Of a stretch of DNA of 64,000 bases, positions 31,309 to 59,042 are shown one piece after another. The stretch lies in the IMG/VR virus record IMGVR_UViG_3300017917_001342, positions 1 to 64,000 of that record; one strand, written 5' to 3'. The notes below the pieces were generated by a model that worked only from the letters and a program-made list of their open reading frames with translations, made no database searches and was not told where the DNA came from. Positions within the stretch are counted from its first letter, which is position 1, and every line of letters starts with the position of its first letter. The translations under genes were made by a program, and so were the position numbers.

Positions 31309-31724
31309 TATACAAATATAGTACGCAGTACTTTTGTAAGATCTCTGTTCAACATCTTAAATGCTGTATCATAATCAACAACTGCATAGTTGTCCATCTC
31401 CGGCGTCATTACACCATGATAGTCAAATAGACTAGGACAATGCAGTGTTTTAACATCCGGCATTTGCTCAACACTGTGTTTGAATAGCACAATTTGTTTG
31501 TTGTGTTTATATTCGTATTCACCTAGAAATTCAATTTGATCTATAGTCAATTCAATGCCGGTTTCTTCTGCTAGTTCACGTACAGCAGTTTCGGCAAATG
31601 ACTCACCGGGATCCTGTCGGCCTTTGGGAAGGTTCCATGTGACATTGTGTGTGGGATGGCAAATTAGCAATTGTGTACCATTGGTGATCAACACACCGCA
31701 GGTGATCTGTTTTGGTTTATTCAT
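31308..31724 (-). CDS. NUDIX hydrolase
   Basis: G..DPGE....TAVRELAEETG Nudix box. Confidence 0.93.
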   Translation of the reverse strand: MNKPKQITCGVLITNGTQLLICHPTHNVTWNLPKGRQDPGESFAETAVRELAEETGIELTIDQIEFLGEYEYKHNKQIVLFKHSVEQMPDVKTLHCPSLFDYHGVMTPEMDNYAVVDYDTAFKMLNRDLTKVLRTIFV

Positions 31725-32022
31725 ACGTCACGGGGCTCCATAGTGCTTTGAATTGTTCGGCTGTGTCTGACGACCTAAACAACACAGCCCCGCTAGGATG
31801 AATCAGATACTCTCTCGGTGAATGCTCTTGGCACCAATCCATAATAGCTGCGTGAGGATGCGTTGCATGATCATACAGTACAGCATACTTATAGCCCTTG
31901 TCAAGCCAAACATCATGAACTGCTATCTGACCATCACAAAAGAAACGATGTGCAATCCAACCCCTTGGCCTATGTATCCATTTGCTTTCAAAAATCTCAG
32001 CACCGAAAATTCTTACTCTCAT
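31717..32022 (-). CDS. FxLxW microprotein
   Basis: DWCQEH...FRSSDTAEQFKALWS. Confidence 0.8.
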   Translation of the reverse strand: MRVRIFGAEIFESKWIHRPRGWIAHRFFCDGQIAVHDVWLDKGYKYAVLYDHATHPHAAIMDWCQEHSPREYLIHPSGAVLFRSSDTAEQFKALWSPVTYE

Positions 32023-32282
32023 GAATACCTCAATACAAATGCCATACGTTGTTCAGCACTTTTAAACTCTACACTGCCTTTGTTGTCTATTAACTCTGCA
32101 TCATATTTTGCCAATTCGTCATCTGCAAGACTTCGCCAATAACGAAACGGCATACCGCTTCTACGAGTCATACCGTCGTAGTCTGCTATAATAGCAAGTT
32201 TAAAATTATCCCATAGGTCAGTGTCGACTATTTCAACAGTATAATTGTGCTTGGTAATACTGTATACTGTAAGTGAGTACAT
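32019..32282 (-). CDS. FxLxW microprotein
   Basis: FKSAEQRMAFVLRYS*. Confidence 0.75.
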   Translation of the reverse strand: MYSLTVYSITKHNYTVEIVDTDLWDNFKLAIIADYDGMTRRSGMPFRYWRSLADDELAKYDAELIDNKGSVEFKSAEQRMAFVLRYS

Positions 32283-32302
32283 ATTGACTTTTAAAGCTAA
32301 TA

Positions 32303-32551
32303 TTAACCCCAAATTAGTCTAAAATGCACAGCATCGGTAGGATCAGTAAATTTCATGTCTGTGACTAAAACTGTCGATTCACCTGGTTCGAGGCGTGAAT
32401 TTTTAAAATCAAAAAGTACATATTCTTGTGGTACAAAGCTTGGGCAATGATCTATTGCCCACTGTATAGCCATTCCTATACGTATTTTACCGTTTGTGCG
32501 GCCTTTAGAAGTGTCGAGTTCAAATTTCAAAGTTGTCATTTTTACATCCAT
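32303..32551 (-). CDS. FxLxW microprotein
   Basis: QWAIDHC...FTDPTDAVHFRLIWG*. Confidence 0.8.
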   Translation of the reverse strand: MDVKMTTLKFELDTSKGRTNGKIRIGMAIQWAIDHCPSFVPQEYVLFDFKNSRLEPGESTVLVTDMKFTDPTDAVHFRLIWG

Positions 32552-32742
32552 GTTAATTTAAATAGTGTTGCAAATTCATTAGTACTAAAATAGAAAGTTG
32601 CTGAACCACTGAGGTCGTAAGTGTAACTCCAATCTCTAACACTTTCACCGATATTGTCCTTACACCACAGTTTCATTTCGGTTCGTTGATCCATAGATAC
32701 GTTAATCACTGTAACAGGAAAATTATGATAATATACCATCAT
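32542..32742 (-). CDS. FxLxW microprotein
   Basis: WCKDNIG...FSTNEFATLFKLTWM*. Confidence 0.8.
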   Translation of the reverse strand: MMVYYHNFPVTVINVSMDQRTEMKLWCKDNIGESVRDWSYTYDLSGSATFYFSTNEFATLFKLTWM

Positions 32743-32948
32743 AGCCAAACCAGTTTAAACAGTGTTAGATCCTTTTGGCTAGTGAAATGCAATTCATATA
32801 CATAATCACTTGTTAAGCTAACGTCACTGACGTCAACAATTTTAAAACCATGGTAACAGCTACAGTTGTCTTTTGCCCACTGATCTATAGCTGACATTTC
32901 AGTAAGAGAAAACTGTGTGTCACTGAGATAGTAATCAATTACGTCCAT
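32739..32948 (-). CDS. FxLxW microprotein
   Basis: QWAKDNC...FTSQKDLTLFKLVWL*. Confidence 0.8.
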   Translation of the reverse strand: MDVIDYYLSDTQFSLTEMSAIDQWAKDNCSCYHGFKIVDVSDVSLTSDYVYELHFTSQKDLTLFKLVWL

Positions 32949-33172
32949 TTTAACACAAACTCAAACCATTTGTCATCGTCGTCGAACTGTATAAAGCGTT
33001 TGCGATTTTCCTGTTTAACAACACCGCCATGTTCAAACAACCAGTCTTCAAATTCATTAGTATGATGATGTCTTGACATACGTTGATATGAATAATGATA
33101 GTATGTGTTAAATCGCAGCGCCCGCCAACGATTATACACAGTGTCTAATTGATCGGGGGTTGTACGCTTCAT
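32939..33172 (-). CDS. FxLxW microprotein
   Basis: DWLFEHG...FDDDDKWFEFVLKWT*. Confidence 0.8.
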   Translation of the reverse strand: MKRTTPDQLDTVYNRWRALRFNTYYHYSYQRMSRHHHTNEFEDWLFEHGGVVKQENRKRFIQFDDDDKWFEFVLKWT

Positions 33173-33369
33173 GACAGACACGTTAATCTAAATGCAATAA
33201 GTAGATCTTGATTTTTGAAATAGAATACACGGCCAAGTTGAAGCCAATCTTCATACTCACAGTTTTCTGTACACCATGCAATCTGCTGCGGCGTCACAGA
33301 CGGTACATTGATATAATACCAACCTTCATCGTGCTCTATTACACCACGGTCATGATCTTCTGGGCTCAT
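33169..33369 (-). CDS. FxLxW microprotein
   Basis: WCTENC...FKNQDLLIAFRLTCLS*. Confidence 0.75.
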   Translation of the reverse strand: MSPEDHDRGVIEHDEGWYYINVPSVTPQQIAWCTENCEYEDWLQLGRVFYFKNQDLLIAFRLTCLS

Positions 33370-33641
33370 AGCAGTTTCAATCGAAATTCTAATAGCTGTT
33401 CTTCGTTATCAAATTCAATATACGGTCTTTTAACATCATTCATATAATTACCGTCGCTTATAAATCTAGGTGCTACTACAGTTATTTTGCAGGTGTAAGT
33501 GTCATTGAACCATCGCTCAAGTCCATAATAATAATTTGCATCTAACCATACACGCCGATTTGTATATTTTGCAATGTGATATGCGTCTTTTATTTTTTCG
33601 TATAGTACAGGATGGTCCTTTAATAACAATACAACAGTCAT
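33366..33641 (-). CDS. FxLxW microprotein
   Basis: FDNEEQLLEFRLKLL*. Confidence 0.75.
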   Translation of the reverse strand: MTVVLLLKDHPVLYEKIKDAYHIAKYTNRRVWLDANYYYGLERWFNDTYTCKITVVAPRFISDGNYMNDVKRPYIEFDNEEQLLEFRLKLL

Positions 33642-33922
33642 GACCACCTCAACTGAAATGCCAGCAGTGCAGCATCATCCTCAAACTTCAAATACCAATC
33701 GCCGTTGTCTTTAACCATTCTTCTCAACGACAAATTATAGACTTTACGGTCAGATTTTGTATGTCTGCACAATGTAACTTGATACGGTTCCTGTGCTAAC
33801 ACACTGTTAATATCGTCTTTGTGCAGTGGTCGTTTTAGTCCTGCACATTGTTGATGTATAAAATTTTGATAAGGCTTTGGTGATACTGCAACACCTGGCC
33901 CGAGCTCTAGTATTGCAACCAT
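33638..33922 (-). CDS. FxLxW microprotein
   Basis: FEDDAALLAFQLRWS*. Confidence 0.8.
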   Translation of the reverse strand: MVAILELGPGVAVSPKPYQNFIHQQCAGLKRPLHKDDINSVLAQEPYQVTLCRHTKSDRKVYNLSLRRMVKDNGDWYLKFEDDAALLAFQLRWS

Positions 33923-33923
33923 G

Positions 33924-34172
33924 TTAACTCCACGCCATTAGAAACATCAAACGATCAGCTTCTGTACGAAATGCATACCCGGGTCGTTCACGCTGGCCAG
34001 TTTTGTCTTTTATACGCTGCATTTCAATCCCTGCTTCTTCTGCCCACTTCTCCATGCTGTGAGAATAGATATAACTGAACGCTAACCATCCCATACCTGT
34101 TGCTCTTGCAACATAAGAGAATTCCTCGTCGATGTCAACAATGCCTTCTAGTCGAAATTTTAAGATGCCCAT
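33924..34172 (-). CDS. FxLxW microprotein
   Basis: KWAEE...FRTEADRLMFLMAWS*. Confidence 0.8.
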   Translation of the reverse strand: MGILKFRLEGIVDIDEEFSYVARATGMGWLAFSYIYSHSMEKWAEEAGIEMQRIKDKTGQRERPGYAFRTEADRLMFLMAWS

Positions 34173-34402
34173 GTTAGTGTAAACAGCGTAGCGTCCTCTG
34201 CGTTTTCAAACAGCCAACGATCGTGGTATGCTCGCCAATCTCCCTGTATGTTTTTCATCCAACTGCCAATGTCTTCTATAGCAACTTTATTTTGCACCAG
34301 TGTCCATCCGAGATTCAAGTAGTGCTGTGTACGAATTTCAGTCAGTACTTCTTTGTCGATTTCTTCTTGCAGTATTTTAGCGATATCATCTTCTATTGTC
34401 AT
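34160..34402 (-). CDS. FxLxW microprotein
   Basis: FENAEDATLFTLTWAS*. Confidence 0.8.
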   Translation of the reverse strand: MTIEDDIAKILQEEIDKEVLTEIRTQHYLNLGWTLVQNKVAIEDIGSWMKNIQGDWRAYHDRWLFENAEDATLFTLTWAS

Positions 34403-34719
34403 AACCAAGTTAACTTTGCTAATGTCGCAGCAGCACCTTTGCCTTTGCGTATCTTTATTAATGCTGCATTATTTGCATCTGTTGGCACATTGAGAATGTA
34501 CGCATTATATCGTGGATGTATAAACCATTGCCAATCAAAGCCTTGACGACCAACGTGCTCATCAAACCACGGTTTATAAACATCGTCTGGTGTAGTTTCT
34601 CTTACTGTGAATTTACTGTGATGTACCCAACCATTGGGCCATGGTAGCAGTAACTCGTAACCCGTCATGTATCGCCACCATAGTCTATGTCGCAATTGAT
34701 GTTTTAATAAGGTAACCAT
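34399..34719 (-). CDS. FxLxW microprotein (degenerate motif)
   Basis: PWFDEHVGRQGFDW...ATLAKLTWL*. Confidence 0.7.
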   Translation of the reverse strand: MVTLLKHQLRHRLWWRYMTGYELLLPWPNGWVHHSKFTVRETTPDDVYKPWFDEHVGRQGFDWQWFIHPRYNAYILNVPTDANNAALIKIRKGKGAAATLAKLTWL

Positions 34720-34931
34720 GTTAGCCTAAAGTACATGGCATCAGATTCTTTTTTAAAACGCCACCAACAGATGTTGGAAATGTTGTCGTTATAACAACTC
34801 CATTTGCCTCTGACATTTGCCCGCAGCCAATTGGTTACACGAAGCAGCACGTCTTGGTCATCAACTGATGCTGCAAACTCTATCCAACCTTCTGTATAGT
34901 CTGGAAACATCTGTTCTTTAGTCATCTTCAT
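34704..34931 (-). CDS. FxLxW microprotein
   Basis: WLRANV...FKKESDAMYFRLTWLPY*. Confidence 0.8.
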   Translation of the reverse strand: MKMTKEQMFPDYTEGWIEFAASVDDQDVLLRVTNWLRANVRGKWSCYNDNISNICWWRFKKESDAMYFRLTWLPY

Positions 34932-35210
34932 GATTCATCTGCATCCAGCTGAGTTTAAAGTAGGTTTCTGTTTCATCGTCTTTGAAACTGAGACGCAGAC
35001 TGTCTACGCTTTTGTCTATTTCAACAAACCAATCTCGATTAAATTCACCAATGTTAGCTTCTAGCCATGGCTGAGTTTTTTCATAAATTCAATGGCCAAA
35101 CTCAATTGCCTGTAACTCAATTCACTTTCAGCATAACCAAAATAGTTTGCTGGAATACGACCTAATTGAGCTTTTACTATTTCTTCTCGTATTGTATCTG
35201 TTATCCCCAT
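34918..35210 (-). pseudogene. Frameshift-split FxLxW microprotein gene (absent from ORF track)
   Basis: ATG 35210 frame stops at 35061; the -1 frame after the A6 run (35081-35076) reads TQPWLEANIG...FKDDETETYFKLSW...* to 34918. Confidence 0.7.
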
Positions 35211-35482
35211 ACCATCAACTCCTCAAAAGTAGTATACTGCCATTTGCAACTAGTGCGTCGATATTCTGCCCAACCATCTTGCCAAGTAATCTGACGGCGC
35301 ATCACAGTTTTCAACCACACAGTTTTACCCATTTTCATAGGATGGTCAACTGTAAAAATTTCATCTGTATACCAGTAAATCACTGTAACAGGCCGCCATG
35401 CAAACCATTGCTGCCACGGTCCAAATTCAACAGTGTTGTCTTGGTATATATGGCGATATAGTGTGTCTAGCGTATACGGCAT
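35201..35482 (-). CDS. Hypothetical (WFAWRPV motif) embedded in array 1
   Basis: Coupled ORF ending ...LMVWG*. Confidence 0.7.
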   Translation of the reverse strand: MPYTLDTLYRHIYQDNTVEFGPWQQWFAWRPVTVIYWYTDEIFTVDHPMKMGKTVWLKTVMRRQITWQDGWAEYRRTSCKWQYTTFEELMVWG

Positions 35483-35841
35483 TATGACCACAACAACGCA
35501 AACTGCATTGCAACAGTTTGATCCATAAACATTATCACATGCTGTGGATGTGATACATGCCTGCCAGGTGCATACTCGCTACACCAACCAAGAACATCTT
35601 GCCAACGATGAGTTTTATTATAAAACACAGGGTATTGATAACCTTCGTTATACCAAGAAATGTGAATTGCCACACGGTCGTTACAAAAATAACGATAGTA
35701 TGCTGGCAATTTATCTTTGAGACTTACCCACATGCTGTCTATACCAAACGTAACAACAGCACCTGGTTCGTCTACATGTATTTTACGAATATCTTTCTGT
35801 GTGAGATTTAGTCTTGCGGCACAGTGTGAAGTGTAACCCAT
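35482..35841 (-). CDS. FxLxW microprotein
   Basis: WCSEY...FMDQTVAMQFALLWS*. Confidence 0.8.
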   Translation of the reverse strand: MGYTSHCAARLNLTQKDIRKIHVDEPGAVVTFGIDSMWVSLKDKLPAYYRYFCNDRVAIHISWYNEGYQYPVFYNKTHRWQDVLGWCSEYAPGRHVSHPQHVIMFMDQTVAMQFALLWS

Positions 35842-36071
35842 TTTACTTCAGGCTCCCATTTGCAGTGAAAGAATTCATGGTCGTCTTCTTCACCCCATAC
35901 ATGTACTACAGGACCCACATCCATAGACTTGCCTAGGAATACTGTATGTGTAATCAGCCAACTAGGATCTGTATCGTGACGATAACCTAGTGTGTCTAAG
36001 TCTAGTTGCACAGCAGACTCAATTGCCGTAACATCGCCCGAAGGCACATTATGCCATTTGAATTTATACAT
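35808..36071 (-). CDS. Hypothetical (possible distant family member)
   Basis: EEDDHEFFHCKW. Confidence 0.6.
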   Translation of the reverse strand: MYKFKWHNVPSGDVTAIESAVQLDLDTLGYRHDTDPSWLITHTVFLGKSMDVGPVVHVWGEEDDHEFFHCKWEPEVKWVTLHTVPQD

Positions 36072-36364
36072 CAGCGTACCGTCCCTGCGAAAATGCCAAA
36101 GATTAATTGTGTGTTCGCTTCGTCCATGAAGCCAGGATAGATCTGTTCTAGTGTGTCAACATCAATTGATTTGTACCCACTGTTGGATTTGTGAGTATAC
36201 TTTTTGTTGTTGCCAACGTGTTTGAACTGCATCTTGGCACCGCGACGACACCAAAAGTTATAGTAGGTCATTACGTTGCCATCTTCGTCTACACGTTCAA
36301 GCACACCCCACAGTTTGTCGGATGTGCCTTGTTTGTACCAGCCTGCCCAATATACGTTAAGCAT
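36071..36364 (-). CDS. Hypothetical (WGR-like, tentative)
   Basis: SDKLWG...FWCRRG; AGGAG RBS. Confidence 0.7.
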   Translation of the reverse strand: MLNVYWAGWYKQGTSDKLWGVLERVDEDGNVMTYYNFWCRRGAKMQFKHVGNNKKYTHKSNSGYKSIDVDTLEQIYPGFMDEANTQLIFGIFAGTVR

Positions 36365-36373
36365 GATTGCTCC

Positions 36374-37018
36374 TTAGAGGTTAGCGCAGTAGTCGTTGAA
36401 TTCTTGATCTTCTTGAATACCTGCTTCGCGCAGTTTGCCACGAGCAGCACTAGGTGTACCGTCATACATGAAGATATTATCACCGAGATTTTCAAACTCA
36501 AACGGTAGATCAATACGGCATTCTTCAGTGCAGCGTTGACGATGTTCATTCCAATAGCGCACTGGTACAATGTAAACAGCAGTAACTCGTTTGCCTAGCA
36601 CTGGAATTTTACTATAGGTAGCATAGAACAGATATTCTTCTGGGTCAACACTTAGCCAGCTACGTTCACCGTAGATAAATCCATCACCTTCAGTTTCTTC
36701 TGGCGGCATGTGTGCTGCGACAGGTTGCGTAACATCATCTGTATCATCTTCACTTGCAGAGTCGTCGGCATCTGTATCAGCAGCTTCATCTTCGGGATCA
36801 GGTAGATACTGATCTGGGATATCAAAATCGTGAATAGTCATAGGTTCTAGATCTTCAGTGCGGTAGCCAATGTCCGGATTGGTTTTGCAGAGTAGATCGA
36901 TACGTTTCTCTCGAGTAGCAGAATCTGCAAACACTTCGATCGGCGAATAGAAAATGTTGCAGTCTTCACGGTTACCGTGATCGTAGTCATAGATAAGAAC
37001 GTAAATCTTAGTAGTCAT
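36374..37018 (-). CDS. Hypothetical with acidic linker
   Basis: ORF, GAGG RBS. Confidence 0.7.
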   Translation of the reverse strand: MTTKIYVLIYDYDHGNREDCNIFYSPIEVFADSATREKRIDLLCKTNPDIGYRTEDLEPMTIHDFDIPDQYLPDPEDEAADTDADDSASEDDTDDVTQPVAAHMPPEETEGDGFIYGERSWLSVDPEEYLFYATYSKIPVLGKRVTAVYIVPVRYWNEHRQRCTEECRIDLPFEFENLGDNIFMYDGTPSAARGKLREAGIQEDQEFNDYCANL

Positions 37019-37373
37019 GGTCTTGTTCCTCAAGTTCTTTCACACGTTGTTGAGCAGCTTCTAGTGTTGGGTAACAGTCGTCAAAGTAAGGGTCGTTTTC
37101 AAAGTAGTATTCTACGTTGCCAGAGCTTTTATATTCGAAGTAATATTCATCCTGCTGGTCTTCCGGATTTGTTATCTTACCACGGCAGATTTTTACCACT
37201 GAGCCAACATACATGAGTTCATGTATTTTGTAAAGCCATGTAGGCCTATCATATCTATGCCATTCTACACCGTTGGCATCGATCATTTTTATTTTATGTC
37301 GTGTGAGTATAGAATTGATGTGTTCGATATGATATATCACATCGCCAAACTGCAATTTACCCAGGTCTATCAT
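37008..37373 (-). CDS. Hypothetical protein
   Basis: ATGA-coupled to 37370..37801. Confidence 0.7.
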   Translation of the reverse strand: MIDLGKLQFGDVIYHIEHINSILTRHKIKMIDANGVEWHRYDRPTWLYKIHELMYVGSVVKICRGKITNPEDQQDEYYFEYKSSGNVEYYFENDPYFDDCYPTLEAAQQRVKELEEQDHDY

Positions 37374-37801
37374 AGCCATACCATTTCGAACAGCAGATGA
37401 TCGTTGCGTTCTTTAAATGCAATTACAAAATGTTCTGCACCGCCTTGCACGGATGTAATATAAGTTGATGCGTTAAGGATGGTGTTTTTATCTCGTTTTA
37501 GTATTTTAACATCAACTCTGAATTTACCAACGCAGTTGTCTTTGCACCATTGTTTGATTTCTTTGTACTGATCATGATCAAAATCAACACCATGAAATCC
37601 ATAGTCTTTCAGTTTGGCACGAATCACAGTGGTATAACTATACCCATGATATTGTGTAGCAACAGTACCAAAGGATTTGTTTATGTCAGGGTCATAGACG
37701 TAGTGATACTCTTCCCAAGTAGAAACATTATGCCTTTCAAGAAATTTGCGTTCCTTGTAGGCATTGATATACCCGAGGATTCGTGCAAACCAGTTAGGCA
37801 T
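37370..37801 (-). CDS. FxLxW-family protein (dispersed copy)
   Basis: QWCKDNC...FKERNDHLLFEMVWL*; TGGCTATGA end. Confidence 0.8.
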   Translation of the reverse strand: MPNWFARILGYINAYKERKFLERHNVSTWEEYHYVYDPDINKSFGTVATQYHGYSYTTVIRAKLKDYGFHGVDFDHDQYKEIKQWCKDNCVGKFRVDVKILKRDKNTILNASTYITSVQGGAEHFVIAFKERNDHLLFEMVWL

Positions 37802-37979
37802 ATGCGTTGATCACAAACGAAAGCTGAATGGCACCTGCAATCATCATGGCGAATGCCGCAGATTTACTGACAAATTTCAAAATGCGATTGGTGATTGCAT
37901 CAGATGCCGCAGACCAATAACCTGCTGCTACGATACAAAAAATTCCCAAGGTAATATGAGCAACGTCAAGATAAAGCAT
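37794..37979 (-). CDS. Small two-TM membrane protein
   Basis: AGGAG RBS, hydrophobic. Confidence 0.65.
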   Translation of the reverse strand: MLYLDVAHITLGIFCIVAAGYWSAASDAITNRILKFVSKSAAFAMMIAGAIQLSFVINAYA

Positions 37980-38000
37980 GTTAGTTCTCCTTTTCAAGTC

Positions 38001-38029
38001 AACATAACAGAAATGCGTAGCTGTGTCAA
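38001..38029 (-). promoter_or_regulatory. Early sigma70-type promoter
   Basis: TTGACA-17-TATGTT. Confidence 0.65.
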
Positions 38030-38443
38030 CTAGTGATTAGTGTCTTCGGTTTTTACTGCAATAGAATCAAATTGCCAATCGCTCCATTGTGCATCAAGAC
38101 CGTTGCGAGTTTTACATTCAACAGCAGTTTGCGGAATAACAGTGCCTTTGTAGTTTACCTGCACTTCAATTTCTTGACATTCTTTAAACTGTGCGTTCCA
38201 TCGCATTGGATAACTTGCAACAAACAGCCCGCTGACAAAACAGCCAATAAACGTTACCACTGTAACCATACCCAACACTGGTGCATATTTGCCGCCGTCA
38301 AGTGTAAGCTTAAAAAACAATGCAGGGAGCAGTGCTGCAATTGCTGTACCTATAAACAACATGGCAATTTCTACCAATGGTGTAGCAGGTGCACCGTAGA
38401 GATAAGAGTTGGCAAAATAGCCAATCACAGTGTCAAACGTCAT
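38030..38443 (-). CDS. Two-TM membrane protein
   Basis: Two hydrophobic helices; ATG 38443. Confidence 0.65.
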   Translation of the reverse strand: MTFDTVIGYFANSYLYGAPATPLVEIAMLFIGTAIAALLPALFFKLTLDGGKYAPVLGMVTVVTFIGCFVSGLFVASYPMRWNAQFKECQEIEVQVNYKGTVIPQTAVECKTRNGLDAQWSDWQFDSIAVKTEDTNH

Positions 38444-38447
38444 AGAC

Positions 38448-39113: not shown

Positions 39114-39408
39114 CGTGTTTCTGCGCTTTCCATTTTGCCAATTGTATACGAGCCTGTTTACGATGTTCAAGTGGCGTTGTCATCACAGTGACTATAACAT
39201 TGTCTTTTACTGCGAACAATAGATCATTGTCACCTATGTAGATCATACTGCGATGCAGTATGCCCTGGCGGTCAATGTAGCGTTTAAATCTTCCAGCAGT
39301 TTCATTACCTGGCATACTGCTTATTGCTTTGTTAATAGTAACGTCTACAGCACTTTTAACAACACCGCCACGTTCTCGCAAACGTTTCTCTGCATGTTTG
39401 GTTTTCAT
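39106..39408 (-). CDS. Hypothetical (T.HA..R..ER, RelE/BrnT-like fold possible)
   Basis: TKHAEKRLRER...IVTVM. Confidence 0.55.
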   Translation of the reverse strand: MKTKHAEKRLRERGGVVKSAVDVTINKAISSMPGNETAGRFKRYIDRQGILHRSMIYIGDNDLLFAVKDNVIVTVMTTPLEHRKQARIQLAKWKAQKHDD

Positions 39409-39764: not shown

Positions 39765-39765
39765 G

Positions 39766-50592: not shown

Positions 50593-50799
50593 CTATTCAG
50601 AAACAGCAGTCTCTGCGGCCAATGCTTTGCGAATCCAACGCATGAACAGCATGGCCTTGTCTTCAGGATTGAAGGTTGCATCCGCAGTATCATTCACAGG
50701 TACAGGGAACACGAATCCGTTTTCACAACGGTAATAGAGTTCACCCTTACGATAGAATTGAAATGTTACTCGGCCTTTGATGCAATCCTTGATATCCAT
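50593..50799 (-). CDS. Small hypothetical protein
   Basis: MDIKDCIKGRVTF...KAMLFMRWIRK; track start overlaps the tRNA. Confidence 0.7.
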   Translation of the reverse strand: MDIKDCIKGRVTFQFYRKGELYYRCENGFVFPVPVNDTADATFNPEDKAMLFMRWIRKALAAETAVSE

Positions 50800-50822
50800 G
50801 ATATTGTTCTTTTCTAAAATTA

Positions 50823-50912
50823 TGGCGGAGGGTGTGGGATTCGAACCCACGAGGGGCTTTCACCCCTGACGGTTTAGTAGACCGCTGTTTTCGACCGCTC
50901 AACCAACCCTCC
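50823..50912 (-). tRNA. tRNA-Ser, anticodon ACT
   Basis: GGAGGGT/ACCCTCC acceptor, GCGGT-CTACTAA-ACCGT anticodon arm, long variable arm, GTTCGAATC, G73, encoded CCA. Confidence 0.9.
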
Positions 50913-50921
50913 ATACTGTTA

Positions 50922-50950: not shown

Positions 50951-50953
50951 CTA

Positions 50954-51691: not shown

Positions 51692-51707
51692 AACGATTCT
51701 CTAATAA

Positions 51708-51784
51708 TGGCGGCCACGGTAGGACTCGAACCCACAACCTTCTCCTTAGGACGGAGCAGCTCTATCCAGTTGAGCTACGTAGCC
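51708..51784 (-). tRNA. tRNA-Arg, anticodon CCT
   Basis: GGCTACG/CGTGGCC acceptor, A20, GCTCC-GTCCTAA-GGAGA, GTTCGAGTC, CCA. Confidence 0.9.
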
Positions 51785-51875
51785 ATTTGTATTTTAATTT
51801 AGCATAGACTGATGTGTACTGTCAAGTACACTGTGCAATTTGCCAATAAATATCACATAATCGTCAAGGTATGCT

Positions 51876-53402: not shown

Positions 53403-53580
53403 CCAGTGATTCGATCCAGGCAGCAAATCTCTCTTGACGTAGTTCTTTTATTTGACTTTCTGTCATAGACACATATTCAATTGGACTTAGCGTAACAGAG
53501 TCTCGATGTGTGACGCTGTTATGTGCAAAATCAAAATACACAGTCCACCAACCGTCTGGACGTTGTGTTGCACCTAACAT
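53395..53580 (-). CDS. Small late protein
   Basis: GGAG RBS, late promoter AATAAATA at 53611-53604. Confidence 0.6.
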   Translation of the reverse strand: MLGATQRPDGWWTVYFDFAHNSVTHRDSVTLSPIEYVSMTESQIKELRQERFAAWIESLVK

Positions 53581-53582
53581 CT

Positions 53583-53621
53583 ACTGAGCTCCAATTAACT
53601 GTATATTTATTGAAGCTCAGT
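53583..53621 (-). promoter_or_regulatory. 13-bp hairpin sequestering the RBS, overlapping a late promoter
   Basis: ACTGAGCTTCAAT...ATTGGAGCTCAGT. Confidence 0.7.
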
Positions 53622-54087
53622 GACGATTTGCGTAGATGATTTCCACAAAGCCTTCATCGTGTGTGGGTTCTTCAAGCTGGCTCTTCATACCCATCACAAT
53701 GTTTGCAGGAATAGTCTTGCCAGGACGATTTGCAAGACGACGATTCAGTTCAGTGTCATCCGGAGTAGTAAAGTACACCGCAACAACGTCGTAGTGTTCA
53801 GGCACAATGGCCAGTTTCTTTTTGCGAGTTTTTGCAGTGATATTGGTTTGATCCCAGATCACAGTGCGATCAGCGGCAAACGCATCAGCAGCGTCTTTGT
53901 ACATCTGCTTTTCAGCAGCAGCAATTTCTGCTTTGAACACATCGTTGTAGGTCTTACCCTGCGCAGCCGCAGCAGCTTCGATCTTGTCGTCAGTGCTAAG
54001 AACCGTTTCGCGATCAAGACCCATGAACTTGAGCCACGTGCTTTTGCCGCTACCCGGAACGCCAATCAACATATACAGTTTCGGCAT
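53617..54087 (-). CDS. P-loop kinase (polynucleotide-kinase-like)
   Basis: GVPGSGKST, STD, WDQTN, R...R; AGGAG RBS; TTGACA-16-TATAAC promoter starting 54138. Confidence 0.85.
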   Translation of the reverse strand: MPKLYMLIGVPGSGKSTWLKFMGLDRETVLSTDDKIEAAAAAQGKTYNDVFKAEIAAAEKQMYKDAADAFAADRTVIWDQTNITAKTRKKKLAIVPEHYDVVAVYFTTPDDTELNRRLANRPGKTIPANIVMGMKSQLEEPTHDEGFVEIIYANRH

Positions 54088-54121
54088 AGTGTATCTCCTT
54101 TGTTGCTAGTGTTATAGCAGA

Positions 54122-54328
54122 TTATGTTTCAGTGTCAAGACCCATTGGTCCCTGCATGAATTTTAAAAATCTCAAGTTGCCGTCAAGTTCTTCTTCGCTG
54201 ATGCCGCAACTCCATGCATGCAAACAGTTGGGACTATTGGTTTTACAGATAGGGCATTCCCATCCATAACTGTGTTTGAATTCATATAGTACCAAACACT
54301 TTTCACAAACCGGCGGGCCCAGTCCCAT
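54122..54328 (-). CDS. Zinc-finger microprotein
   Basis: CEKC...CPIC. Confidence 0.65.
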   Translation of the reverse strand: MGLGPPVCEKCLVLYEFKHSYGWECPICKTNSPNCLHAWSCGISEEELDGNLRFLKFMQGPMGLDTET

Positions 54329-54602
54329 CTAATTTAATTCCTTTTATTGCAGCTAGAAATATCAAATTGCTTTCTAACTGCTGATCCGATAATCCACTTT
54401 CCTCAATGTCAAATTGCGGGTCACCGTTGCCGCAGATTGGACAGTTGATATAAACACCCCCGTCGTCGAAGTATAAATTGCAGACTACGGAGCAATGTTC
54501 ACACACTGCTCCGCTAGGTCTTAGATATTCGCCCCTGATGTAATTATTGAGTTGCAACCATTGCACGCTTGTCAATGACTTTATCAGCAAGACCGTAGGC
54601 AA
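54303..54602 (-). CDS. Zinc-finger microprotein, paralog of 54122..54328 (start uncertain)
   Basis: CEHC...CPIC...GLS...L..NL.FL. Confidence 0.55.
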   Translation of the reverse strand: MPTVLLIKSLTSVQWLQLNNYIRGEYLRPSGAVCEHCSVVCNLYFDDGGVYINCPICGNGDPQFDIEESGLSDQQLESNLIFLAAIKGIKLDGTGPAGL

Positions 54603-55152
54603 CAGATTCGCTGGCAGTTAGGAATGTGTCGCGGTCCATGTCTTTTTCAAACTGTTCGTAGGTTTTGCCTGCGCTGTTGTGATCAACATAGATCTGCGTA
54701 AGTTCAACTTTCATACGTTCGATCTCCCTGTAGGTGATTGCAATGTCGCTGACCATACCCTGTGCGCCACCGCTTGGCTGATGAATCATGTGACGAGCAT
54801 GTTTCATAATATAACGATGACCAGGCTCACCTGCCTGTGCTAGTAGAGAACCCATACTAGCAGCTTGACCCATTACAAATGTGTGTACAGGACTCTTGAT
54901 AAACTGCATGGTATCATAGATGCTCATACCCGCAGTAACCGATCCACCTGGGCTGTTGATGTAAAAGTTAATCGGCGCCTTGGCATTTTCACTTTCGAGC
55001 AGCAGCAATTGCGCAACAATCAAACTGGCACTGTGATTATTAACATCAGTGTCCATAATGATAATACGGTCTTTGAGCAAACGGCTATAGATATCATAGC
55101 TGCGTTCGCCACTGGCACTTTTTTCTACTACAATAGGCACTAGATTAGGCAT
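54544..55152 (-). CDS. clpP: Clp protease proteolytic subunit
   Basis: DIYSRLLKDRII, YINSPGG, AASMG, MIHQP, DRD. Confidence 0.96.
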   Translation of the reverse strand: MPNLVPIVVEKSASGERSYDIYSRLLKDRIIIMDTDVNNHSASLIVAQLLLLESENAKAPINFYINSPGGSVTAGMSIYDTMQFIKSPVHTFVMGQAASMGSLLAQAGEPGHRYIMKHARHMIHQPSGGAQGMVSDIAITYREIERMKVELTQIYVDHNSAGKTYEQFEKDMDRDTFLTASESVAYGLADKVIDKRAMVATQ

Positions 55153-55182
55153 AGATTTTCCTTTGTTTATTTTTCAGTATAA

Positions 55183-55209
55183 ATGCCGCCGACAGTTTTG
55201 TCAGCGGCA
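55183..55209 (-). terminator. Possible terminator hairpin
   Basis: TGCCGCTGACA-aaac-TGTCGGCGGCA followed by TTT. Confidence 0.45.
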
Positions 55210-55365
55210 AATTTGATTAATTTCGTCTGCGCTGCGATCAGACATAGCATAGCTGGCAAGACACTTGGATTGTTTTTCAGCTTTGGCATACTCGCTAACA
55301 GCAAGGCTACTAAACATTGCTATAATTGAAATAGCAGTTGCTATCATAAACCATTTAAATTCCAT
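55201..55365 (-). CDS. 54-aa single-TM protein (not in ORF track)
   Basis: MEFKWFMIATAISII...C...ICR*. Confidence 0.6.
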   Translation of the reverse strand: MEFKWFMIATAISIIAMFSSLAVSEYAKAEKQSKCLASYAMSDRSADEINQICR

Positions 55366-55366
55366 C

Positions 55367-55738
55367 TTAACGTCCTTTCAAACTTTCAACATAGCGATGA
55401 ACAAAATCGCAGAGGCTGTCGAATTCACTATAGACTTCGTTCAGGCCGCCACTGTGACCACGACTGTAGGCTTCGCCCCAAATCACACCGAATTCACTAT
55501 CGCAGAGTCCGTAATCTGCTTTGAGACGATCTTCAAATTCGCTCAGACGTTTACCAGCAGCAGTGCTGGCCGCTGCGCGAGCAGCTTCGTATTCTTTGAA
55601 TGCAACTTCGTAGGCTTCCAGTGCATCTGCATAAGCCCGTGCTTCGGCAGCCGTTGCACCATGTGCGATGCGCGGCTTTGTGGGTTTGGTAGGGTACACA
55701 ATGTCACGAGCATTGTAGTAGTTGAAATCGTAGCTCAT
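55367..55738 (-). CDS. Hypothetical protein
   Basis: AY..GHS.G..EV motif; AGGAG RBS. Confidence 0.75.
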   Translation of the reverse strand: MSYDFNYYNARDIVYPTKPTKPRIAHGATAAEARAYADALEAYEVAFKEYEAARAAASTAAGKRLSEFEDRLKADYGLCDSEFGVIWGEAYSRGHSGGLNEVYSEFDSLCDFVHRYVESLKGR

Positions 55739-55748
55739 TGTAGTCTCC

Positions 55749-55967
55749 TTATTCGCTCAGCGCAAACTGCATAAACAGCGGAGCAAGTTCGTGTTGCAGA
55801 GGTTTGCGAACACCGTAGGCAATGCAGCCAAAGCGAGTGTCCATGTCAATCTCATCTTTACCAACAGTATAGAACTTACCGTTGATACATTCAAGCACAG
55901 TTCCTTCGGGAATCTGTTGGTATTCATCAGGTGTAAACAACCACAGTTCTTCATCCCAACGCTGCAT
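55749..55967 (-). CDS. Hypothetical early protein
   Basis: AGGAG RBS; TTGACA-16-TATTGT starting 56020. Confidence 0.7.
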   Translation of the reverse strand: MQRWDEELWLFTPDEYQQIPEGTVLECINGKFYTVGKDEIDMDTRFGCIAYGVRKPLQHELAPLFMQFALSE

Positions 55968-56091
55968 AGCTTTCTCCTATGTTGTTACTTGCACAATACA
56001 ACATACTATGCGATTGTCAACCACATATAAAACAACGATATAAGAAAAAATCTGTTAATGATTTCAATGTGGTATTTTTATACTATTTGAT

Positions 56092-56382
56092 TTATAGCCA
56101 ACGCAACGCAAACAGCATTGCATCTTCTTTTCGATAGAACATAAACAGTGTACCACGGCCAGATTTATCTCTGGACGTCCACGGATATTCCGCACTCAAC
56201 GACCGCCATTGATTTTTCTTGTACAAGTCTGCCATTGCACCTATGTTATCTATTAGCCAACCTCGGCAACTGGCATTGTCTTCAGTCATTGGCAATATGA
56301 CTTTGTATATTGGACTGTCAGACAGACTAACAACTTCAACTGTGTTGCTAGGATATTTGATCAGTTTGGGGTCTAAATCCAT
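56092..56382 (-). CDS. FxLxW microprotein
   Basis: WLIDNIG...FYRKEDAMLFALRWL*. Confidence 0.8.
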   Translation of the reverse strand: MDLDPKLIKYPSNTVEVVSLSDSPIYKVILPMTEDNASCRGWLIDNIGAMADLYKKNQWRSLSAEYPWTSRDKSGRGTLFMFYRKEDAMLFALRWL

Positions 56383-56624
56383 CGCAGCATAAACTCCATG
56401 TATTCAGATTCACGATCAAATTCCAGTGTGTAGTTGTTTCTGTTACGATGTATAAACGTAATAAAACGTCCATAGGGATGCGATTCTGCCCAGGCTCGCA
56501 TTGCATCTATTGCAGCATCGTCGGCAAAACTTTCTGTACCGAGATACACAGACCAACATTCAGGACTTACTGTGTTCAGGCGTTCGAGTACGGTTCGCGG
56601 ATAATGTCTAGTAACAGTTATCAT
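56373..56624 (-). CDS. FxLxW microprotein
   Basis: FDRESEYMEFMLRWI*. Confidence 0.8.
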   Translation of the reverse strand: MITVTRHYPRTVLERLNTVSPECWSVYLGTESFADDAAIDAMRAWAESHPYGRFITFIHRNRNNYTLEFDRESEYMEFMLRWI

Positions 56625-56857
56625 GCATACCTCATCATAAACATCAAATGAGACTCAGCGTTTTCAAACCGCAATATGTAAAGATTAATTCTAGTACGCT
56701 CTAATGTTGCACAGTATTCGTCTTTTAATCTACGGTGCAGTACAGCACTTATATCTTTACACTTTGGATTTTCGTCGTCTAGTTCGTGAACAAAACGTTG
56801 CCACCATTCTGGGGCATCCATTAATGTACCTTTCATCTGATAACTGATTATAGCCAT
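56621..56857 (-). CDS. FxLxW microprotein
   Basis: FENAESHLMFMMRYA*. Confidence 0.8.
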   Translation of the reverse strand: MAIISYQMKGTLMDAPEWWQRFVHELDDENPKCKDISAVLHRRLKDEYCATLERTRINLYILRFENAESHLMFMMRYA

Positions 56858-57057
56858 CGCAACATAAACTCAACACGTTGTTCATCACTATCCCATTTAA
56901 CTTTTTTACCCAAATGACATCCTTGTGCAGCTAACCATTGTTCCCTGTTTGCATAATATACATTTGCATTAGCAACCTCACTATGCATCTTGTAATAATA
57001 ACGATGATATATCCGACAAATCAGTTTGCGTTCGGCATTGGGGTCAAGGCTACTCAT
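56848..57057 (-). CDS. FxLxW microprotein
   Basis: WDSDEQRVEFMLRWL*. Confidence 0.8.
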   Translation of the reverse strand: MSSLDPNAERKLICRIYHRYYYKMHSEVANANVYYANREQWLAAQGCHLGKKVKWDSDEQRVEFMLRWL

Positions 57058-57308
57058 AGCCACTCCATCATGAATAACATATGTCCTTCATCTGATGCAA
57101 ATTCCAACAGATGAGGTTTACCAAATATACCGTAGTCATAATATGCATCGTAGCGCAATTCAATCACAGAGTTAATATATTCAGCAAATTCTCGAGTATT
57201 ATCAACATTAATTTTAAGGTCTATCGCGTCTTCAACGTTATGTTCGATGAACCGTTGCCACCATTGCGGAACATCCCTGCGGCGAGTGTCTAACGTGTAG
57301 GTGATCAT
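57054..57308 (-). CDS. FxLxW microprotein
   Basis: FASDEGHMLFMMEWL*. Confidence 0.8.
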   Translation of the reverse strand: MITYTLDTRRRDVPQWWQRFIEHNVEDAIDLKINVDNTREFAEYINSVIELRYDAYYDYGIFGKPHLLEFASDEGHMLFMMEWL

Positions 57309-57526
57309 GACCACTCCAACATAAACAGTGTGTACAAACTTTCATTTGTGAATTTAACACATTCTTCGCCGGCATCTACTACTGACTGGTATCGAGTCAA
57401 TAATACATGATCAACATATCTCTCAATATTTTGATCTCTTGGCACAGTGTCTTGGCAATGTTCAATAAAATTAATCCACGGTTTTGGACATTTGTAGAGA
57501 TTATCTGGTAGCTGTATTAATATCAT
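57305..57526 (-). CDS. FxLxW microprotein
   Basis: FTNESLYTLFMLEWS*. Confidence 0.8.
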   Translation of the reverse strand: MILIQLPDNLYKCPKPWINFIEHCQDTVPRDQNIERYVDHVLLTRYQSVVDAGEECVKFTNESLYTLFMLEWS

Positions 57527-57783
57527 AGCCATGTAAGAAGGAACTGTGTCCGTTCTCCCTCTGTATTGAAGTATGCTAGATTGCTAATATTCCAAACACC
57601 ATGTTCATCGAGCCACTGTTTGATCTCGTCCATACGCTGTGCTTCTTCACTGTTGACACCAGCTTTGTATTCAAAGCGTATGCCAAACTGTTCAGGGCTT
57701 GGCTCAACTACCCAGACATCTTCTTCAACCTGATGTGGTGTTTCATTTTCAGGTAGATAAAATTTTACAAACTTAATTGCCAT
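57523..57783 (-). CDS. FxLxW microprotein
   Basis: QWLDEHG...FNTEGERTQFLLTWL*. Confidence 0.8.
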   Translation of the reverse strand: MAIKFVKFYLPENETPHQVEEDVWVVEPSPEQFGIRFEYKAGVNSEEAQRMDEIKQWLDEHGVWNISNLAYFNTEGERTQFLLTWL

Positions 57784-57786
57784 TGT

Positions 57787-57996
57787 TTATAACCATCTCA
57801 ATTTAAACAGCGTAGCAGTGTCCTTGTTTACAAATTCAAATACTGCACGATCAAAGTCGAATGGATGATACCGCCACGACCCCCATCGGTTAAACCCTTG
57901 CTCAGCCAACCATTCACAAGCACTTCTAACATCACTGTCGGCAATTACAACCTGATATCTATGTGGAGACGTAGTCCAGTAATCATTTGCAGTCAT
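57787..57996 (-). CDS. FxLxW microprotein
   Basis: EWLAEQG...FVNKDTATLFKLRWL*. Confidence 0.8.
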   Translation of the reverse strand: MTANDYWTTSPHRYQVVIADSDVRSACEWLAEQGFNRWGSWRYHPFDFDRAVFEFVNKDTATLFKLRWL

Positions 57997-58385
57997 AGCC
58001 AACTCATTTTAAACGCTAACGCATCTTCTTCATACGCAAACCAGAACAAGTTGTTTCTATATACAACAGAACCTAGTTTGCAGTTGTCTCGTATCCACCC
58101 TTGATAATCTGGGTAAGGGTCGTCGCCCCATCGCCATTGAACTTGCACGTATGAGTATCCAGCGGTTTTCATATCATCAACCCAATGAGTGCGCCTGCGA
58201 TTATTAAGACGCAGAAAGTGTTGATAATTCTGTTTAGTGAATTGCATACCGGTTTCATCAATATGGATTATTTTAGCAGGCACTATTGTATGACTATACA
58301 AGCTGTTAAGATCAAAGTTTAAGATATAGTTTTGTGCATGCTCTGTGATTTGAGTTGCAATTGAAGGATCATATAGCTGTGTCAT
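57993..58385 (-). CDS. FxLxW microprotein
   Basis: WIRDNC...FAYEEDALAFKMSWL*. Confidence 0.8.
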   Translation of the reverse strand: MTQLYDPSIATQITEHAQNYILNFDLNSLYSHTIVPAKIIHIDETGMQFTKQNYQHFLRLNNRRRTHWVDDMKTAGYSYVQVQWRWGDDPYPDYQGWIRDNCKLGSVVYRNNLFWFAYEEDALAFKMSWL

Positions 58386-58777
58386 AGCCAATGCATCTTA
58401 AACAGTACAGCATCGTTGTCATAGGCAAACCAAAAATAATTGTGTCCACTGACCCAGGTACCTGGTTTGAGGTTTGTGTTGCACCAATCGCGTTGTGCAA
58501 TATAACCGTTTGAAGTTTTAACATAGCTGTAACCCGCAGCTTTCAACTCGTCAAACCGCTGACGTTTTTTACGATTGTAGAGTCTTACAAAATGTTGATA
58601 GTGTGCTTTTTCCATATCAAATATTACAGCTATTTCATTTTTAAAAAATTCGTTCCAAAAATACAGTACCTGTGTTACACTCTTGCCAAGGCCTCTACTT
58701 TTTAAAACAGTTATCGTATGCGGCTTCATACCCTGTGTGGTCGGCATGAAGTAATCGCTTTCTATGTCTATTATCAT
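58382..58777 (-). CDS. FxLxW microprotein
   Basis: WCNTNL...FAYDNDAVLFKMHWL*. Confidence 0.8.
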   Translation of the reverse strand: MIIDIESDYFMPTTQGMKPHTITVLKSRGLGKSVTQVLYFWNEFFKNEIAVIFDMEKAHYQHFVRLYNRKKRQRFDELKAAGYSYVKTSNGYIAQRDWCNTNLKPGTWVSGHNYFWFAYDNDAVLFKMHWL

Positions 58778-58778
58778 G

Positions 58779-59042
58779 TTAGCCCCACACTAACTTAAAC
58801 TGTAACCTATGTTCTTCAGTGGCAAAATAAAATCGCAGCCAGTAACGTATCCACGATCCTTCTGGTAGATTTTCACTTGCCCAAGTATATGCGTCTCTGG
58901 TATTTCTAATAGACACTTTAACACAGGGATACTGATTGTCAATTAGATCTTGTATTACAATTGATTTGCGACGATTGTTAAGCCGTAAAAAATGCCTGTA
59001 GTATTTCTTACTAGCTAGTCTGGTGTCAAACTGTTTGGCCAT
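58779..59042 (-). CDS. FxLxW microprotein
   Basis: WASENL...FATEEHRLQFKLVWG*. Confidence 0.8.
   Translation of the reverse strand: MAKQFDTRLASKKYYRHFLRLNNRRKSIVIQDLIDNQYPCVKVSIRNTRDAYTWASENLPEGSWIRYWLRFYFATEEHRLQFKLVWG

Follow-up and report, generated by a model that had tools for sequence, protein, structure and literature searches.

Why would a giant phage carry more than two dozen tandemly arranged genes for tiny, strongly divergent proteins that end in nearly the same way, and what might such a repertoire do? The question arises from a 64,000-nucleotide stretch of DNA (hereafter the window), the first 64 kb of a 518,643-bp IMG/VR contig, in which an initial annotation from sequence alone had proposed about 29 microproteins with a C-terminal F-x8-F-x-[LM]-x-W motif, in two tandem arrays plus at least three dispersed copies. 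We first asked whether the pattern exceeds chance. Written as F-x8-F-x-[LM]-x-W followed by 0-3 residues and a stop, the motif occurs in 19 of 230 stop-to-stop ORFs of at least 50 aa on the minus strand and in 0 of 230 on the plus strand, against an expectation from amino-acid composition of 0.003 per 230 ORFs. A profile iterated inside the window, a profile built mostly from outside sequences (A3), and a 435-domain profile together recover 27 minus-strand ORFs at E<1e-3; a further ORF, 32019-32312, is weaker (E 0.002-0.004) but has a clear motif, and three others are possible degenerate copies. The observation is therefore real, and both the count and the coordinates first proposed are accurate. 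The family genes and possible copies are laid out as follows.

56092-59042, minus strand: array B, 11 consecutive family genes (58779-59042, 58382-58777, 57993-58391, 57787-58002, 57523-57783, 57305-57532, 57054-57314, 56848-57063, 56621-56857, 56373-56624 and 56092-56382), all matching the family profiles and with frequent ATGA stop/start overlaps at the junctions.
57993-59042, minus strand: the first three genes of array B, a subfamily with an N-terminal basic motif, Y-x-H-F-[LV]-R-L-[NY]-N-R-[RK]-[RK], placed before strand β1.
31717-35841, minus strand: array A, 13 firm family genes (35482-35841, 34704-34931, 34160-34408, 33924-34172, 33638-33922, 33366-33647, 33169-33369, 32939-33181, 32739-32948, 32542-32748, 32303-32551, 32019-32312 and 31717-32022), with two possible degenerate copies (34399-34719 and 35201-35491) and a small unrelated ORF at 35061-35210.
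37370-37801, minus strand: a dispersed member of 143 aa with a long N-terminal extension (profile E-values 1e-11 to 1e-14), whose ortholog P0011 is 82% identical.
10141-10515, minus strand: a dispersed member of 124 aa (E 8e-13) whose domain is followed by an 11-residue tail, lying beside the clamp-loader and GroES block that is syntenic with the cultured 469-kb Sinorhizobium phage Phosso.
7634-8065, minus strand: a divergent dispersed member of 143 aa (E 4e-4 to 7e-4 with two outside-built profiles, the match covering residues 92-131).
23680-24291, minus strand: a 203-aa protein, added here, with two partial N-half copies of the domain (β1-α1, motifs WCKKN and WYKSN; two matched stretches, E 2e-8 with the 435-domain profile and 5e-5 with A3), whose membership is less certain than that of the arrayed genes.
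50593-50850, minus strand: a possible remnant in which only the β3-α2 half resembles the family (E 0.05 within the window), not counted as a member.

The W-[CLA]-x-[ED]-[NH] helix noted at the outset is also real: over 435 domains the frequencies are W 99%, C/L/I 89%, E/D 64% and N/H 68%. One correction concerns gene starts, as many listed as MAM or MVM are artefacts of the upstream 'A TGG' codon and the real start is probably the ATG of an ATGA stop/start overlap, which we counted at 14 of 27 junctions.

What do these genes encode? Two AlphaFold models, from different members and different alignments (pLDDT 72 and 84, the latter being 83.7 for 32542-32748), agree on a compact β-α-β-β-α domain that ends at the C-terminus of the protein. 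The only highly conserved positions (profile numbering) are W35, W45, F54, F63, L65 and W67, together with E38-N39 and D59-A60, which look like core or helix-capping positions; it is important to note that the assignment of conserved residues as buried rests on residue type and helix or strand periodicity rather than on model coordinates. No polar surface site and no catalytic signature is conserved, pI ranges from 4.2 to 10.0, and N-terminal extensions, the β2-β3 loop and net charge vary freely. In 88% of 437 proteins the chain ends within 3 residues of the last domain position, and sixteen of the 437 carry two domains in tandem. Searches of Pfam-A, PHROGs v4, NCBIfam 20, PADLOC 2.0 and PDB sequences gave only scattered single hits at E>0.004, none of which recurred between members, whereas the best BFVD structural matches are other uncharacterised phage miniproteins, with TM up to 0.76.

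How widespread is the family, and how does it evolve? At E<=1e-3 it comprises 1026 clusters at 50% identity among 1.84 billion representatives. All 38 IMG/VR loci fetched with one motif pattern hold members, of which 33 hold two or more and 19 hold five or more, with up to 23 in 8.4 kb; a single contig (L010) carries 71 copies in 19.4 kb, two further sequences (L005 and L007) carry 8 and 17, and a 40-kb stretch of Phosso carries at least 11. The family is almost confined to phages and mobile elements: 16 pattern hits in 185,579 species genomes are about the chance number by our own estimate, and true members appear in only four of them, one within an integrase plus DUF3987 element and one beside a resolvase. 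In a related strain (L012) array B is collinear at 87-91% nucleotide identity but lacks 57054-57314, while the ortholog of 35482-35841 in another sequence (L013) is 95% identical in protein, with a dN/dS of 0.08. Across ten family ortholog pairs dN/dS is 0.06-0.37, indicating purifying selection, and no signal of positive selection was found by whole-gene dN/dS on one strain pair. For 16 of 18 window members the closest relative below 70% identity lies in another phage, and there is no DNA similarity between neighboring copies, so that these are old paralogs without recent duplication; the only DNA repeat within the arrays is the gene junction, made of the last helix codons plus TGG-CTA-TGA. 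Family genes occupy different gaps in the block that is syntenic between the window and Phosso, and no recurrent partner gene was found next to the arrays, the best candidate occurring in 6 of 45 loci.

A further clue comes from N-terminal modules. The basic motif of the first three array B genes is shared with clusters P0010, P0016, P0022, P0025, P0029, P0090 and others, and in other phages the same subfamily carries upstream of it a segment equivalent to residues 79-131 of T4 gp23, the most conserved part of the major capsid protein and the site of its Gol region. Matches to Pfam PF07068 exceed the cut-off of 24.4 bits in L010:3303-3740 (47.4 bits) and L029:3268-3834 (29.3 bits), BLASTP against T4 gp23 gives E 5e-10 and 4e-8, and the segment is also present in P0022 with six further clusters. 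A profile of the Gol-like N-termini finds nothing in the window (E>0.3). As for the timing of expression, an 8-gene array lies between rIIA-like and rIIB genes in one phage sequence (L076), and the only two T4-type late-promoter motifs in the window lie in front of other genes, but σ70-type promoter scans were at chance level, so the timing is unproven.

Together, these data show that the arrays consist of real genes of one old protein family found almost only in phages and mobile elements; that each encodes a cytoplasmic miniprotein with a median length of 83 aa, whose C-terminal ~55 residues are predicted to fold around an aromatic core and which ends within 0-3 residues of the last conserved tryptophan; that the genes sit head to tail, often with ATGA stop/start overlaps, in the gaps between conserved replication and nucleotide-metabolism genes of large T4-type phages; and that copies are kept by purifying selection while single ones are gained or lost between strains about 90% identical. 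Beyond this we can only infer. We tentatively propose, at somewhat less than even confidence, that the constant domain is a stable scaffold, that specificity lies in the variable N-terminal extension, the β2-β3 loop and the surface charge, and that each paralog would bind a different partner stoichiometrically. In this view the arrays would act as an accessory repertoire of inhibitors, decoys or adaptors aimed at variable host proteins, or proteins of competing elements, made before the late structural genes for host takeover or counter-defence. The lack of a catalytic signature, the one-gene indel between close strains, the absence of a constant neighbor and the modular N-termini are in line with such a role. 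Nevertheless, no binding partner, expression datum or phenotype exists for any member, no homology in the Pfam, NCBIfam and PDB searches links the family to any known anti-defence or host-takeover protein, and old, orthologous paralogs under purifying selection fit stable housekeeping roles as well as they fit an arms race. The shortest members (60-70 aa) have almost no N-terminal extension, so a 'bait plus scaffold' picture cannot hold for all of them. The interpretation in the initial annotation is thus only partly supported: the family is genuine, no library searched assigns it a function, and a conserved core with variable surfaces fits the data, but anti-defence, inhibitor or hub-binding roles remain inference, the RRM resemblance is only topological, and 'undescribed system' overstates what is an undescribed protein family.

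Alternative readings appear less likely. Small nucleic-acid-binding regulators that use an RRM-, KH- or ferredoxin-like α/β fold to bind RNA or DNA, with different paralogs tuning translation, mRNA decay or transcription of different targets, would be in keeping with an RRM- or ferredoxin-like order lacking the last strand, with weak Foldseek neighbors that include a KH domain, a U1A RRM, the papillomavirus E2 DNA-binding domain, Cas2/VapD and ribosomal proteins, and with the strongly basic N-terminal motif (R-L-N-N-R-K-K) of the subfamily that includes the window genes at 57993-59042, two of which have pI 9.3 and 10.0. However, the best PDB match has E=0.3 and the U1A RRM ranks at E=1.9 with TM 0.38, no Pfam RRM hit was found in 20 members at E<=1 nor any Pfam RNA- or DNA-binding family, both models stop after α2, half of the window members are acidic (pI 4.2-5.5), and by strand alternation the positions expected on the open sheet face are not conserved, with no basic patch or RNP-like aromatic pair. 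A capsid-associated role, whether as packaged internal proteins injected with the DNA, head-decoration modules or assembly helpers docking on the major capsid protein, is similarly doubtful: it draws on the Gol-region fusions and on an 11-gene array that starts about 1 kb downstream of the major head protein gene in one locus (L035), yet only a small fraction of members carry the capsid segment, most arrays lie among replication and nucleotide-metabolism genes or in the rII region, no T4-type late promoter motif precedes the window arrays, and members lack the repeats or Ig-like domains typical of decoration proteins.

Less likely still, exposed edge strands of the three-stranded sheet could let paralogs pair into heterodimers, rings or sheets, as the closest PDB shapes include secretin N-domains, EscJ-type ring-building motifs and a designed β-sheet heterodimer (LHD29) with TM 0.5-0.6, some proteins carry tandem domains, and co-transcribed, translationally coupled genes favor co-assembly; but these matches are all nonsignificant, and a copy number of 1 to 71 between phages, with single genes lost between close strains, is hard to reconcile with a fixed composite structure. 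Equally improbable is selfish or nearly neutral filler, spread by unequal recombination at the conserved 3' ends and tolerated because head-full packaging in giant capsids leaves room. The junction repeat could seed unequal crossing-over, tandem duplication has been proposed as a route to jumbo genome growth (PMC5646251), and family genes also ride on an integrative element and lie beside a resolvase, but dN/dS is well below 1 for every copy tested, individual paralogs are conserved across distinct phages, neighboring copies show no DNA similarity, and no nuclease, recombinase or other mobility function is present in proteins of 60-140 aa.

A more speculative and improbable possibility is that the constant domain is a modular decoy or shield platform presenting swappable N-terminal 'bait' peptides copied from phage or host proteins. 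The clearest case would be the Gol-bearing subfamily, one gene of which sits in an rII-region (T4-early) array: made before the capsid protein, it would occupy EF-Tu, or a Lit-type or other capsid-sensing abortive-infection sensor, so that the real capsid protein no longer triggers cell suicide. If so, the arrays would be catalogues of countermeasures against pattern-recognition immunity in bacteria.

Among known systems, the Gol-Lit abortive-infection system bears on the fusions only. Gol is described as a 29-residue peptide in the most conserved part of gp23 that binds EF-Tu and lets the Lit protease cleave it (PMC3014915). It maps to about residues 93-122, and relatives in other phages carry N-terminal segments aligning to T4 gp23 residues 79-131 or 93-120, although the window members lack this segment, most family members have unrelated N-termini, and any link to EF-Tu or Lit-type proteases is hypothetical. 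RRM, KH and ferredoxin-like α/β sandwich domains, and secretin or EscJ ring-building motifs, share a similar secondary-structure order with the predicted two-layer sandwich, but all Foldseek E-values are 0.3 or worse with TM about 0.4-0.6, there is no sequence-profile match, and the domain lacks β4 and the RNP motifs. Arrays of paralogous immunity proteins next to bacterial polymorphic toxin loci, for example SUKH or Imm families, are likewise tandem paralogs of a small fold with a conserved core and variable surfaces, each copy neutralising a different variant of a partner protein; they provide the working analogy for our inferred mechanism, although no sequence or fold relation was found, there are no Pfam hits, no toxin gene is adjacent and the genes here are in phages. 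The closest precedents are the tandem arrays of more than 30 similar genes in jumbo phages G and 121Q (Hua et al. 2017, PMC5646251) and the roughly 35-copy zinc-ribbon expansion in phage G (Iyer et al. 2021, PMC7824862), which were interpreted as products of tandem duplication and, like the arrays of 13-15 and 11 genes described here, are large head-to-tail sets of small paralogous genes of unknown function in jumbo phage genomes. Twenty members gave no match in PHROGs, which we assume covers phages sequenced as early as these; this argues against identity with those arrays, in a comparison made through that library rather than with the G and 121Q arrays themselves. Paralog arrays in jumbo phages are thus already known, whereas the family appears to be new; it has no zinc-ribbon motif, its copies are old and highly divergent, at 13-45% identity, rather than 'very similar', and it occurs across many phage lineages with GC 29-58% rather than in one genome.

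Within the window, all ORFs that the initial annotation had assigned to an expanded microprotein family are present on the minus strand, and its observation of a real, numerous family holds, including its count of about 29 members, its coordinates and its second motif, W-[CLA]-x-[ED]-[NH]. When written as F-x8-F-x-[LM]-x-W followed by at most three residues and a stop, the C-terminal motif occurs in 19 of 230 minus-strand stop-to-stop ORFs of at least 50 aa and in none of 230 on the plus strand, against 0.003 matches expected from the amino-acid composition. Three profiles, namely a hidden Markov model iterated within the window, a model built mainly from outside sequences (A3) and a model of 435 domains, together recognize 27 ORFs at E<1e-3. 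The members cover 7.9 kb, or 12.4% of the window. The weaker ORFs and the further window features referred to below are as follows:

32019-32312, a weaker but obvious family member
34399-34719, a possible remnant
35201-35491, a possible remnant
50593-50850, a possible remnant
56621-57532 and 33638-33922, several members sharing a second N-terminal motif
16826-16833 (-) and 27583-27590 (-), matches to the T4 late-promoter consensus
50823-50912 (-) and 51708-51784 (-), two tRNA genes

The window equals positions 1-64000 of a 518,643-bp IMG/VR contig and encodes a Dda-like helicase, RNA ligase, a tail-fibre protein and the two tRNAs, which ARAGORN reports as tRNA-Ser with anticodon ACT, a seemingly unusual assignment, and tRNA-Arg with anticodon CCT, and which flank a 245-aa ORF. 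The closest cultured relatives are distant, with the helicase reaching only 48% identity. A block with a DnaE-like gene, GroES and a clamp-loader ATPase (window 10141-14544) is syntenic, at 31-44% protein identity, with positions 19009-24609 of L052, the stretch examined from the 469-kb Sinorhizobium phage Phosso. Here the window has a Dda-like helicase where Phosso has three family genes, and nothing where Phosso has about five more, such that family genes occupy different gaps in the two genomes. Relatives of the gene flanking array B (56092-59042) were found in two further loci (L003 and L004) that carry no family genes nearby, indicating that array B is not a conserved syntenic block.

Within the arrays the genes are arranged head to tail, and by our count 14 of the 27 junctions examined have the form nnA-TGA, with the next ATG inside an ATGA overlap; the sequence TGG-CTA-TGA occurs six times. 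Translational coupling is therefore likely, and the apparent 'MAM' and 'MVM' starts in the ORF list are artefacts of the upstream tryptophan codon. At the DNA level only this junction is repeated, at 60-80% identity, and neighboring genes otherwise share no DNA similarity, while protein identity between window paralogs is 13-45%. Scans for sigma-70 promoters and terminators were at chance level.

Two AlphaFold runs, using different members and different alignments, gave the same predicted order of strand, helix, strand, strand, helix, with mean pLDDT of 72 and 84 and the core above 85. Over 435 non-identical domains the highly conserved positions are W35 (99%), W45 (65%), F54 (94%), F63 (97%), L65 (88%) and W67 (98%), together with C36, E38-N39 at the end of helix 1, and D59-A60 at the start of helix 2. 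These are core or capping residue types, a reading inferred from residue type and helix or strand periodicity rather than from inspection of the model coordinates, and no polar position suggests a catalytic or common ligand site. Zinc binding by the W-C-x-E-N-C motif was considered and rejected, as the second cysteine is present in only 25% of domains and the window copies often lack both. The domain is C-terminal in essentially all proteins, 88% of which end within three residues of it; median length is 83 aa, and 16 of 437 proteins have two domains. N-terminal extensions of 0-100 residues and the beta2-beta3 loop vary freely, and pI runs from 4.2 to 10.0. Several members (within 56621-57532, and 33638-33922) share a second N-terminal motif, P-x-[WP]-[WY]-x-x-F-[IV]-[EH], which in the alignment occupies the same position as Y-x-H-F-L in the basic-motif subfamily discussed below and suggests a semiconserved extra helix before strand 1.

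No match to Pfam, PHROGs, NCBIfam, PADLOC or PDB sequences recurs among members. Foldseek searches of the PDB gave no significant match for either model, with nothing better than E=0.3; the nearest shapes are secretin or EscJ ring-building domains, a designed sheet heterodimer, KH, E2, Cas2/VapD and RRM, with TM about 0.4-0.6. Against predicted viral structures the best hits are uncharacterized proteins of uncultured tailed phages, with TM up to 0.76. The RRM likeness proposed in the initial annotation is therefore limited to secondary-structure order, and its interpretation as a whole is only partly supported.

Members are too divergent for BLAST: DNA (megablast) and tblastn searches of the arrays and of single members against 50,697 phage records found nothing, with only a two-domain query reaching phage Phosso at E=2e-3, and a word-indexed protein search recovered few hits and no informative names. 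Profiles were thus needed, and a profile search of 1.84 billion cluster representatives returned 1026 proteins at E<=1e-3, almost all 55-165 aa long. Genomic contexts fetched for hits show arrays again and again, with 8 consecutive genes in locus L005, 17 in L007, and 71 in 19.4 kb of L010 (positions 1-19417 of contig JAFMOA010001880.1, NCBI GCA_017886315.1, GC 29%), a count that leaves out the other 13 kb of the contig. The latter is the largest array seen and fills nearly the whole stretch on one strand. At L007:9249-9999 a cell-wall hydrolase (Hydrolase_2) and the following family gene are separate, whereas in a near-identical contig (L008:202-834) they form a single 210-aa ORF, which may reflect a fusion or a sequencing difference. 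As the family alignment has no conserved stretch of 7-10 columns, further loci were sought with a back-translated pattern for E-D-A-x-x-F-K-L-R-W, which found 38 IMG/VR stretches. All hold family genes, 33 hold at least two, 19 hold at least five and one holds 23 in 8.4 kb; the contigs reach 369 kb and GC runs from 34 to 58%.

Among cultured phages, Phosso carries at least 11 members in 40 kb, all annotated as hypothetical, with arrays at record positions of about 95.3-100.3 kb and 113.1-114.9 kb. By contrast, the 490-kb Agrobacterium phage Atu_ph07, which has a published virion proteome, was unsuited as a model, with only about 5-7 scattered, divergent members and no arrays in the approximately 300 kb scanned (the remaining ~190 kb, at 50-60 kb and 310-490 kb, being excluded). 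The same pattern gave 16 hits in one genome for each of 185,579 bacterial and archaeal species, which we estimate to be about the chance number, and true members appear in only four of them. Of these rare bacterial occurrences, in L064:14-7477 (a Sphingobium MAG) and L067:5597-7239 (a Caulobacteraceae chromosome 2), three to four genes lie in an element with a DUF3987 protein and a tyrosine integrase, and two genes lie beside a serine resolvase. The family is therefore essentially one of phages and mobile elements.

A 2.7-kb contig from a related strain is collinear with array B at 87-91% nucleotide identity but lacks gene 57054-57314. Ten family ortholog pairs give dN/dS of 0.06-0.37, with protein identity ranging from 51 to 98% along one array. 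For 16 of 18 window members the best relative below 70% identity lies in another phage rather than in the window, although the comparison set was enriched for hits to the window profile. No neighbor gene recurs in more than 6 of 45 loci. A recent 'accordion' amplification can be rejected, as neighboring copies share no DNA similarity beyond the junction and most have closer relatives in other phages; the picture is instead one of an old, diversified repertoire maintained by selection, with local gain and loss.

Relatives outside the window provide a further lead. Two long members from unrelated contigs hit the Pfam model of the T4 major capsid protein above its threshold, and their N-termini align to T4 gp23 residues 79-131 and 93-120, a stretch that includes the G-V-Q-P-M motif. 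At least 18 clusters share the same architecture, in which the capsid segment is followed by a basic motif, Y-x-x-F-L-R-L-N-N-R-K-K, and then by the family domain. The following proteins of this subfamily, identified by locus coordinates or cluster handle (P numbers), begin with a copy of the most conserved part of the T4-type major capsid protein (gp23 residues 79-131, the Gol region), and all score above the Pfam Gp23 threshold although they are only 126-188 aa long:

L010:3303-3740, in the contig with the 71-gene array
L029:3268-3834, in a further locus
L076:8417-8827 (P0022), in a locus with rIIA-like and rIIB genes
P0097, P0135, P0063 and P0163-P0168, further clusters

In addition, at L019:1034-1378, in a locus that also holds family genes, a stand-alone 114-aa gene encodes only an N-terminal fragment of a major capsid protein, comprising a leader and the Gol-like region, without the family domain. 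The Gol peptide of gp23 has been described as a 29-residue stretch lying in the protein's most conserved region, which binds EF-Tu and allows the Lit protease to cleave it (PMC3014915). Gol lies at about residues 93-122. One such fusion gene sits in an eight-gene family array between rIIA-like and rIIB genes, which in T4 is an early region. The first three genes of array B in the window have the basic motif, but their N-terminal extensions show no capsid similarity. Together, these data show that N-termini are swappable modules and suggest, without proving, a decoy or shield role against capsid-sensing immunity.

In light of these results we tentatively favor a reading in which the domain is a constant scaffold and each paralog a stoichiometric binder of a different target, with the arrays serving host takeover or counter-defence. 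The analysis itself establishes the reality of the genes, a predicted common fold, the absence of a conserved polar site, restriction to phages and mobile elements, accessory behavior, purifying selection and modular N-termini, whereas binding, the kinds of target and early expression are inferred. The only hints as to timing are genomic position and the absence of the T4 late-promoter motif before the arrays: TATAAATA occurs only twice in the window, at 16826-16833 (-) and 27583-27590 (-), each time 23-25 nt upstream of a start codon, for genes 15517-16803 and 27100-27558, and while the total count is not above chance, the placement is suggestive. Alternative readings, each of which we consider unlikely, are that the proteins are nucleic-acid-binding regulators, capsid-associated proteins, components of mixed oligomers, or selfish filler.

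The family makes up most of a 19-kb stretch in another phage and has more than a thousand sequence clusters in public data, yet it has no name, no previous domain model and no paper that we could find; searches of jumbo-phage reviews and of the Atu_ph07 and AP-J-162 papers found no description of it. Defining it would turn hundreds of 'hypothetical proteins' in large environmental phages into one tractable question, for which a domain model and a predicted fold are now available and a cultured carrier, phage Phosso, exists. If the members are target-specific binders, they could be a rich source of small inhibitors of bacterial proteins and would also offer a readout of which host functions giant phages must neutralize, while the capsid Gol-region fusions give a concrete, testable link to capsid-sensing bacterial immunity. 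As a phenomenon, such arrays are already known: tandem arrays of more than 30 similar genes were reported in phages G and 121Q (PMC5646251), as was a zinc-ribbon expansion in G (PMC7824862). What is new is the family itself, which is absent from any library or paper we could search, and which is far more widespread and more divergent than those examples.
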